From the NCBI RefSeq assembly GCF_033153115.1, contig NW_026889794.1:5146001-5210000 (forward strand): a stretch of 64,000 nt of DNA, in the 5' to 3' direction. The position numbers and the translations under genes are program-made. Source of the stretch: Saccostrea echinata (Eukaryota). Below the pieces are notes generated by a model. The model did not search any database, had not been told where the DNA came from, and was given only the letters and a program-made list of their open reading frames with translations. Of the stretch, positions 27,501-29,327 are shown in pieces (positions within the stretch are counted from its first letter, which is position 1; each line of letters begins with the position of its first letter).

Positions 27501-29327
27501 ACATAGTAGGAAGATAATTTTATTACAGACATAACATAGTTGTTTATCTGTGGATGGGACACCTAAACTTTGTTTTCTTTACAATGGTATTAGAAGAAAA
27601 ATAAAAGCCCATGCATTCATCATGGACCCAATACCCACAACGGGCACGGTCACACCCAACCCAATGTCCACGTTCCTGTGTTGTCAAACAGACATTGCAA
27701 GTTTCAGGAACTTTTGTCGTTATTGTTTCAGTCTGAGTGCATTTGGTCTTGCATACAACTATCCTTCTCTTCTTTGAAGTCTGATATCCATCTGATCTCT
27801 TTTCCTTTTCTCCTGATTTAGAGTTAGTTATAGGGGGGAGAAAAGTAGGTTGAGGAGATGGAAACGAAGGAGAGGGAGAGGCAAGAGAAGGTTGTGGGGA
27901 GAGTGCATTTAAAGATAGTATAGGAGGTATTGACGAGGTAGAACAGTGTGGGGTTGAGATAAGTTCAGCAGAGGTAGAAGATGAGCAATTCGTAGTAATA
28001 GAAGAGGAAGAGGATATCGAAGTTGTTATAACAGAGGGCGGTGCGCTAGGAACGTTAGAGGGGGGAGATTTTATGATTCGCTGCATGTGCTGAAATGTAT
28101 AATCAATGCGTGTTTTAAAATTAAAAAAAAGTAATAAAAAAATTTCAATCCAACCACTTCTTTAAATAAATAAATAACTTATTGAATGAGATTAATATAC
28201 TAACATCTTCAAAATAAGGTGTGGCATACGTGGACATTTTTCCAGATGCTGATTTCACAATAATTAATATTTCACTTTTACTTGTAAGATGGANNNNNNN
28301 NNNNNNNNNNNNNNNNNNNNNNNNNNNNNNNNNNNNNNNNNNNNNNNNNNNNNNNNNNNNNNNNNNNNNNNNNNNNNNNNNNNNNNNNNNNNNNNNNNNN
28401 NNNNNNNNNNNNNNNNNNNNNAACATGAAATCCCAATTGAACATAAGGGACTCCAGTGATGATACAATTTTCCACACCAATCTTGAAAATGAAATATTTC
28501 AGTGGCGTTCAGAACTAAGAGCAGCAGAATACCTCTCCAATCCCTTCTCCTCCACCGATCATACTTCTCTATGCAACAAATCACTAGATAAAGAACTCGT
28601 AAATTTTTCCCAGAAATGTAAAAACAATAGACAACATTATATTAAAGAAGTTTCTAAAAATAATTCAGTCAAACTCTCACTTTCTCTAGAACCAATTTTT
28701 TTTACAAGTTTGGAACGCACACACTTTCATTCTATCGAAAGTAGAACAAAACCAGAAATAGCAGCCAAGATTGAGGAACAGATTGAGAAGCTACTTGATT
28801 TGGATTTTGAAGCTGGTATGCATATTTAAAATTTTCAACATCTTTAAAATAATCATACGTATCGGCATGTTTTTCTGCATTTTTTTTTTTTTTTGGGGGT
28901 TAAAAAAGGAGAAGACAGAAAAGTACAATGGAAAAGAGACATAAAGAATGGTGGCAAAAAAATGTATATTAATTTCTACAAAGAATTATTAGAAGTTGTA
29001 GAAAGTTCGCAAGATGTGATGAAGGACGAAGGTACGTTATATATTCATACCTTTTTCAAGATTGTGGTTTTTCTCTTGTACACGGAGTCGTGTCGCTTTT
29101 TTGCATCCTCTATGTATGTACTGGGCGTAGGTCCAGATCTTGACAAGCCCCTCTTCCTTTGACCTTTGTTATTTTTCCCGGGATTTACTTTACTATTCTG
29201 CATGATATTATAACCGCATATATTATATTTTTTAATTTATTTTTAATAAAATAAAATTAAAAATACGAAAAAGGGGGGGGGGTTATTGTAAAATTATCAT
29301 TTTTTTTTCAGAAACACCTGGAATATG
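24561..29327 (+). CDS. Spliced DDE transposase, DUF6589/Academ-like
   Basis: Exons about 24561-25914, gap-26208, 26286-26394, 26536-26765, 27296-27438 (GC donor), gap-28815, ~28909-29031, 29311-29327. Motifs: N-terminal CSCKQH...CTAC; FDNNQV; VGCDGLP; QPGLGHVEINM; FRAGIRRNN; GEGCDFILEAKNRQAKSW. Confidence 0.75.
27544..29203 (-). CDS. SRF-like MADS-box + Ser/Pro linker + PHD-finger protein carried by the transposon
   Basis: Exon 29051-29203 (MQNSK...YIEDAKKRHDSVYKRKTTILKK|gtatga); exon gap-28205 (HLTSKSEILIIVKSASGKMSTYATPYFED|gttagt); exon 28089-27544 (cag|HMQRII...CNVC...WVGCDRARCGYWVHDEC...FRCPIH). Visible junctions are phase 0. Confidence 0.78.

Follow-up and report, generated by a model that had tools for sequence, protein, structure and literature searches.

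MuDR of maize encodes a transposase (mudrA) and a helper (mudrB), which are transcribed convergently from long terminal inverted repeats (TIRs), and the element generates a target-site duplication (TSD) of 9 bp. In En/Spm, the TnpA protein does both a regulatory and an accessory job. TnpA and the Myb-like protein of Harbinger elements are alike in being products of a second, non-catalytic open reading frame with a sequence-specific DNA-binding domain, in elements that carry repeated, inverted subterminal motifs. In RAG-like elements (ProtoRAG, Transib), a 5-bp TSD is found together with a convergent partner gene that ends in a PHD finger and could couple the transposase to chromatin. We describe here a 6.2-kb DNA transposon that lies at 23880–30062 of a 64-kb stretch of Saccostrea echinata DNA (contig NW_026889794.1; the whole stretch is referred to as the window) and holds a transposase gene together with a gene encoding both a MADS box and a PHD finger. 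We are highly confident that the latter is a real, conserved gene encoded by the element. It also appears probable, with less assurance, that the element is a recently mobile member of an unclassified lineage in which the MADS-PHD protein serves as an accessory or regulatory subunit at dyad motifs of the TIRs.

The Saccostrea element shares features with each of these systems and differs from each. Like MuDR, it is a two-gene autonomous element with near-identical TIRs of about 200–250 bp and converging genes, but its TSD is 5 bp rather than 9 bp and its partner protein has DNA-binding and histone-reading domains; Pfam scans gave no match to a Mutator-like element (MULE), SWIM or MURB-like domain, and the TSD is short of the 9–11 bp of the MULE/MuDR group. 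It has in common with RAG-like elements the 5-bp TSD and the convergent partner gene ending in a PHD finger, but it differs from them in its CAGGT rather than CAC termini and in a partner with a MADS box in place of a Kelch propeller. The RAG1 catalytic core was not found in any Pfam scan; the sole RAG-related row was a distant relative's chance-level match (13.5 bits) to the importin-binding region of RAG1. With respect to TnpA and the Harbinger protein, the partner encoded here has another DNA-binding fold and an added histone reader and accompanies another transposase lineage, and its binding to the element ends is a prediction. The element and its genes are made up of the following features, in window coordinates.

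23875–23879, unstranded: left TSD of 5 bp, ATTAA; the same five bases follow the right end
23880–24125, plus strand: left TIR with terminus CAGGTCCAGCAC; 246 nt, 100% complementary to 29817–30062
23906–23933, unstranded: two GCTATATAGC palindromes, 18 bp apart, about 25–55 bp inside the left tip, followed by additional AAGCTAT/ATAGCTT half-sites
24561–26216, plus strand: first coding block of the transposase, from tblastn with residues 1–501 of the S. cucullata protein P0009
26285–26812, plus strand: further transposase blocks to the stop of the 628-residue model; residues 501–628 of P0009, with an intron inside
27544–28089, minus strand: exon 3 of the MADS-PHD gene, with a Ser/Pro-rich linker, KKRR, PHD finger and stop; matches to PF00628, PHD_NSD and P0025
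28205–28293, minus strand: visible part of exon 2, encoding the half of the MADS box with the beta-hairpin; P0025 is 45% identical here over its residues 275–303
28294–28421, unstranded: assembly gap of 128 N; by homology it should contain the intron-1 acceptor with the first codons of exon 2 and, on the opposite strand, the beginning of the nested transposase exon
28422–28829, plus strand: conserved coding block, located in the first intron of the MADS-PHD gene and homologous to the C-terminal region of transposase relatives that lack introns
29051–29203, minus strand: exon 1, encoding the basic N-terminal arm and the half of the MADS box that contains the helix; matches to PF00319, P0025 and the family profile
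29817–30062, minus strand: right TIR, 246 nt, with the same two palindromes at 30009–30036
30063–30067, unstranded: right TSD of 5 bp, ATTAA, repeating the five bases of the left flank

The boundaries of the element were fixed by comparison with other copies in the genome. Its termini read CAGGT, and the sequence match to other copies ends exactly at CAGGTCCAGCAC and its complement. The whole genome was searched with exons 1 and 3, with the transposase and with the plus-strand block nested in intron 1. Besides many divergent loci, this revealed three near-identical copies (contigs C1, C25 and C45) with different flanks and with TSDs of ATTAA (the window copy), CTTAA and CAAAG; two of three searched blocks were 100% identical among the copies, and the nested plus-strand block was 99% identical. 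The TIRs, the TSDs and the presence of several copies in unrelated flanks are those of a cut-and-paste TIR transposon. Because the copies are near-identical, each has its own 5-bp TSD and identity ends at the termini, the window element bears the signature of very recent cut-and-paste transposition. Its two genes read inward and converge, each starting a few hundred bases inside its TIR. The element itself sits within another repeat, in which 23223–23257 pairs with 30063–30097 across the element, and the adjoining stretch 23253–23879 is a foldback with inverted arms of 81 nt and 156 nt.

A preliminary description of this locus had placed between the TIRs a gene of three minus-strand exons encoding an SRF-like MADS box and a PHD-type finger. 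All of the peptides it quoted were found on the minus strand, and the exons (27544–29203) fall inside the TIRs at 23880–24125 and 29817–30062. Exon 1 opens with ATG and closes with ...ILKK, followed by a GTATGA donor. Exon 2 has readable codons at 28205–28291, starting HLTSKSE..., with two more bases before the gap; its donor reads GTTAGT. A TTTCAG acceptor precedes exon 3, which has a stop with AATAAA about 20 nt downstream. By prediction from these exons and splice sites, the MADS-PHD gene is a three-exon gene with a product of about 270 amino acids, in which a disordered Ser/Pro-rich linker with the KKRR motif separates the basic arm and MADS box from the C-terminal PHD finger. The S. cucullata protein P0025 (XP_062577088.1) matches exons 1, 2 and 3 in the same order, with identities of 62% (residues 224–270), 45% (residues 275–303) and 54% (residues 370–481). 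Its alignment with exon 1 runs as far as residue 270 and that with the readable exon 2 sequence begins at residue 275, so that the estimate of about four residues hidden in the gap stands in the form of about four codons plus the intron-1 acceptor, on the condition that the window gene follows the order of P0025. The stated length of the gap is unreliable because the distance from exon 3 to the neighbouring conserved block varies among the three near-identical copies (333, 351 and 335 nt). Of the MADS box, the window copy is predicted to hold the first half and the end of the second, the junction of the two falling in the unread stretch.

The window gene was searched exon by exon, and matches were judged by the curated Pfam cut-offs of 26 bits for PF00319 (SRF-TF), 24 bits for PF00628 (PHD) and 23.9 bits for PHD_NSD. 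Exon 1 matched positions 1–22 of PF00319 with 16.4 bits (E=0.006), which is below the cut-off, and matched a family hidden Markov model (HMM) built without the window rows with 33.3 bits (E=8e-9). Its YKRKTTILKK segment aligns with SKRKTGIMKK of SRF, and the basic residues of the DNA-contact helix (KRK...KK) are present; exon 1 alone found no match among sequences of the Protein Data Bank (PDB). P0007, an annotated Saccostrea cucullata protein with the PHD finger but without a counterpart of exon 1, matched positions 23–47 of the same model. The two MADS halves therefore complement each other on the model and are in register, exon 1 covering positions 1–22 and P0007 positions 23–47. An exhaustive homology search seeded with P0007 recovered full-length relatives; one seeded with P0029 added only a single extra fragment. 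Among the relatives, P0025 scored 47.8 bits over positions 1–48 of PF00319 and also has a PHD finger, and P0029 scored 39.7 bits. P0025 has in addition an N-terminal extension of 223 residues for which no counterpart was found in the window, and which we treat as a possible lineage-specific exon set or gene-model fusion.

The affinities of the family within the MADS group were examined with a family profile, A1, searched against all PDB sequences. The best matches were MCM1 (3.8e-8) and SRF (5.5e-8), followed by MEF2 (about 1e-4) and then SEPALLATA3; A1 also matched BPTF, through its PHD part. Scores of 36.8 bits for MCM1 and 36.3 for SRF compared with 25.5 for MEF2 suggest by profile score that the family is nearer SRF/MCM1 than MEF2, and P0025 alone gave a similar separation (29.7 bits for SRF-type proteins vs 18.3 for MEF2). 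Identity to the SRF MADS box is about 38% by hand count on the alignment. The proposal of an SRF-like MADS box is thus borne out through the relatives P0025 and P0029, both above the cut-off, while exon 1 of the window copy gives only a sub-threshold match to half of the model. We conclude from these comparisons that the family is in all likelihood a genuine SRF/MCM1-like MADS lineage.

Structure prediction was carried out on P0025. Its AlphaFold2 (AF2) model contains a helix at 252–271, strands at 283–287 and 293–297 and a helix at 299–311, with a predicted local distance difference test score (pLDDT) of about 70–79, and so has the long helix followed by a two-stranded antiparallel sheet of a MADS box. 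The family resembles SRF and MCM1 in its basic N-terminal arm, KRK...KK helix, beta-hairpin and following helix, and in a predicted dimer formed through the helix and first strand. It is unlike them in that no SAM-type extension was recognised and in being PHD-fused, carried in a transposon, multi-copy, and encoded by an intron-split box that houses a transposase exon. A homodimer check on residues 228–312 of P0025 gave an interaction prediction score from aligned errors (ipSAE) of 0.75, compared with 0.01 for the best control; among reference proteins, 21 of 30 with structures solved as pairs attained the mark set for this score, as did none of 23 solved as single chains. Agreement of contacts between runs was at least 82%, and the pLDDT of the partner was at least 74. 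The predicted interface consists of helix 256–274 and strand 280–289, as in solved MADS dimers.

The PHD-type finger was supported directly by the window sequence. Exon 3 scored 26.8 bits against PF00628 and 26.4 against PHD_NSD, both above the cut-off, and shows the finger pattern CxxC...WVGCD...C..WVH..C...FRCPIH. Its zinc ligands are arranged as C-x2-C, C-x4-C, H-x2-C and C-x2-H, a C4HC2H variant in which the last ligand is His, not Cys. The PHD fold is predicted for the homologue P0025 with a pLDDT of about 90, and the finger of P0025 superimposes on those of MLL4, JADE1, ING and BAZ2A (VIA-align) with Z scores of 5.0–5.4 and root-mean-square deviations (rmsd) of 2.2–2.4 Å over 48–52 residues. 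In the alignment of P0007, two tryptophans, that of WVGCD and one lying two positions ahead of the zinc-binding His, align with Y23 and W32 of BPTF; the residue preceding the first Cys is Thr, not Tyr. The two Trp residues at BPTF cage positions are hints of a possible methyl-lysine-reading function.

The association of the MADS-PHD gene with the transposase was examined across the S. echinata genome. Twenty loci had a match to the PHD exon, and 16–18 of them had the transposase within 10 kb in convergent orientation. In S. cucullata, P0025 and a transposase homologue are encoded on contigs of equal length. Flanking TIRs were found at seven of eight divergent loci examined, and these represent four families, three of them with two copies each. 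At all seven of the TIR-bearing loci the PHD gene lies between the TIRs and the element ends in CAGGT, except for a single end of one copy that reads CAGAT. The 5-bp TSDs of the divergent families are TTTAA and ATCAT; TTGAA and ATAAC; TTTAT; and ACATA/ATATA (one mismatch). Four independent insertions in two divergent families have both CAGGT termini and matching TSDs, and an older copy of the C6 family has one TSD mismatch. Within the S. echinata genome, the suggested check on whether homologues lie between such TIRs beside this transposase gave a positive answer for every divergent family in which TIRs were found. The MADS box of the C6 family, detected with the family HMM, is split at the same position as in the window and has the transposase exon in its intron. 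In the most divergent families, C9/C63 and C14/C29, the MADS halves stand in the same order with matches that are weak to not significant.

Sequence divergence between the families is consistent with selection on the protein. The nonsynonymous divergence (dN) is 0.25–0.44, the synonymous divergence (dS) is saturated and there are no stops, so that of the dN/dS comparison suggested earlier dN can be given and the ratio is not computable at saturated dS. Proteins with a MADS box, linker and PHD finger are also annotated in the sea star Patiria miniata, in which two loci encode the same protein (named in UniRef as MADS-box domain-containing protein), and in the brittle star Amphiura filiformis. 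These comparisons show the gene to be what appears an old, selectively maintained part of a transposon group, not a captured host fragment. The preliminary description had called it an element-encoded accessory protein; what stands is that divergent families consistently carry it within their TIRs, next to the transposase, with the accessory role taken up below as a prediction. Two other origins were considered and rejected. The gene is not a host gene interrupted by a transposon, as it lies inside the TIRs in all three copies. Neither is it a recent capture of host SRF, because identity to SRF is only about 38% while animal SRF boxes are highly conserved.

Some further loci came to light in these searches. 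Canonical MADS boxes of the host are separate and all on C2, at 12027777–12027896, 12077659–12077778 and 16157702–16157952; scores of about 75 bits were obtained for two of them, while the other is divided between two exons of 34–36 bits each. A degenerate family is found at C16:4586626–4596040 and C54:36227421–36239955, in which the exon for the MADS first half has apparently been inverted relative to the second half and the PHD exon, being on the other strand, and forms the end of a 214-residue open frame. These two loci share the same flanks and TSD and represent a duplication or haplotig, not separate insertions. At C9:13860967–13862940 there is an open frame of 657 residues with the look of a reverse transcriptase/RNase H, which starts within the right TIR of the TTTAA-flanked C9 copy, about 14 bases before its tip.

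The transposase of the window element is 99% identical to an annotated S. echinata protein and contains invariant acidic motifs (FDNNQ..RNWRVRYD, GCDG and GLGHxEIN). It had no Pfam match, and no match among PDB sequences was found by profile. The AF2 model is poor (mean pLDDT 54), with the exception of an N-terminal Cys-rich domain at pLDDT above 80. A check for a DDE/D-type catalytic core accordingly yielded the invariant acidic motifs and neither a database match nor a usable model. Two transposase relatives gave sub-threshold matches to DUF6589 (PF20231) of 22.2 and 23.9 bits (cut-off 27), and Protein Atlas listed a DUF6589 cluster for the transposase with a score of 0.84, a weak lead; the same resource returned nothing for the sea-star MADS-PHD protein. 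The likeness to DUF6589/Academ elements consists of these weak matches in two transposase relatives, all below the cut-off. The superfamily of the transposase is, on present comparisons, unclassified, with a weak similarity to DUF6589. Academ elements are abundant and long in bivalves (PMC10294476). A literature search on Academ accessory proteins found nothing relevant.

One part of the transposase appears to be encoded within the MADS-PHD gene. The plus-strand block at 28422–28829 matches the C-terminal part of a 1045-residue uninterrupted frame at C4:4465711, and the N-terminal part of the same frame matches the transposase. Because both match one frame, the intron that interrupts the MADS box contains a transposase-related exon in opposite orientation. 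The block is conserved in the C6 copies with 57–58% identity and no stops, and the nested layout recurs in that family. The S. cucullata transposase model of 628 residues ends at the equivalent of 26812, without block 28422–28829. There is a second unread stretch in the window element, 145 N at 25932–26076, in the transposase just after GLGHxEIN. A distant uninterrupted relative of 1054 residues is found at C1:6129655–6132816 (the one with 23.9 bits to DUF6589), and a transposase match at C7:7231689–7232249 has identical scores and lies in the same open frame of 1084 residues. These C1 and C7 relatives may form an intron-less sister lineage.

The TIRs contain motifs of the kind that a MADS protein might recognise, an A/T-centred dyad being the target of a MADS dimer. 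The 10-mer GCTATATAGC occurs four times in the 64 kb, in each case within a TIR, vs 0.04 occurrences expected. The dyads of the window element are of the GC(W)6GC type and ATAT-centred, and the dyad-bearing stretch of the TIR reads AGCTATATAGCT. Other families have their own dyads at the same place, namely AGCTACGTAGCT; CCATATGG with CCAAATGG, the CCATATGG dyads belonging to the C9 family; and CCCGATATCGGG. In the mechanism we propose, the MADS box would dimerise the protein, the dimer would bind the ATAT-centred dyads 25–55 bp inside each TIR, and the PHD finger would contact histone H3 tails. The protein would then act as an accessory or regulatory subunit that joins the element ends, or the TIR promoters, with chromatin, in the manner of TnpA of En/Spm and of RAG2. 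That the MADS-PHD protein acts at the element's own TIR motifs is, in our assessment, a serious possibility that falls a little short of an even chance.

Several observations weigh against this proposal. The dyads are not canonical CArG boxes of the form CC(W)6GG, being GC(W)6GC here and CC(W)4GG in another family, and the N-terminal Cys-rich domain of the transposase could bind them instead. The gap at 28294–28421 interrupts the MADS box of the window copy, and the visible exon 2 has no Pfam match on its own and scores only 6.4 bits against the family HMM. Foldseek ranks MEF2, MCM1 and SRF first for the predicted structure, but with E values of 0.02–0.06 and large rmsd, and the favourable homodimer prediction may reflect the model's memory of solved MADS dimers. 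The extreme form of such doubts is that the MADS portion is a functionless transduplicated host fragment, or that its resemblance to MADS boxes is due to chance, for which one can point to the score of window exon 1 alone (16.4 vs 26 bits) and to the unmatched exon 2. Against this stand the homologues P0025 and P0029, well over the cut-off, the two halves that hit complementary model parts, and the open frames and domains conserved across families with saturated dS and into echinoderms; identity of about 38% to SRF also does not fit recent capture. A fragment or a chance resemblance is thereby largely refuted, and we consider it extremely improbable.

Two other functions can be weighed against a role at the TIR dyads in transposition. 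The protein could be mainly a transcription factor of the element, binding the dyads upstream of both inward genes and switching the transposase and its own expression without being needed for cutting or joining. MADS proteins are classical dimeric transcription factors, the family profile matches SRF, MCM1 and MEF2, the two genes converge from starts that lie a few hundred bases inside TIRs of identical sequence (246 nt), and the dyad motifs are confined to the TIRs within the 64 kb. This alternative overlaps with the accessory-subunit proposal and is not exclusive of it, TnpA being a case where the two jobs are combined; as the main function of the protein we think it rather unlikely. The protein could also act on host chromatin in anti-silencing or targeting, as VANC or an anti-silencing factor derived from Harbinger might, with the PHD finger reading H3 tails and the MADS box binding A/T-rich host sites. 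The finger passes the Pfam cut-off, aligns best with the BPTF and ING readers of trimethylated lysine 4 of histone H3 (H3K4me3) and has Trp at two cage positions, and several TSDs are A/T-rich (ATTAA, CTTAA, TTTAA and TTTAT). However, only an alignment assigns the cage residues, His takes the place of Cys as the last zinc ligand, and nothing ties the protein to silencing; action on host chromatin is in our estimate improbable.

A literature search found no paper on a transposon-borne animal MADS gene, on a MADS-PHD fusion or on DUF6589 as a transposase. A more far-reaching interpretation, which we advance only tentatively, is that these elements constitute an undescribed bilaterian superfamily characterised by CAGGT termini, a 5-bp TSD and a DUF6589-like transposase. 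The MADS-PHD protein would be an obligatory subunit, whose MADS dimer would recognise and bend the TIR dyads to assemble the transposition complex while the PHD finger would tie the reaction to a histone mark; it would be a functional counterpart of RAG2 with another DNA-binding fold and the third, mobile, MADS lineage of animals.

The MADS-PHD family would thus stand as a third animal MADS-box lineage beside SRF and MEF2, which are usually the only two counted. It is multi-copy and mobile, combines the box with a histone reader and occurs in both molluscs and echinoderms. An intron interrupts the box, and for this reason genome annotation mostly overlooks the MADS-PHD gene. With a transposase exon lying in that intron on the other strand, the two genes are also physically tied. 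The element has two genes and near-identical copies, and the role of the partner is directly testable because the accessory protein has two well-understood domains. The parallel with RAG1/RAG2, in the 5-bp TSD and in the convergent partner with a PHD finger, makes this family a natural comparison for how transposases may recruit chromatin readers.

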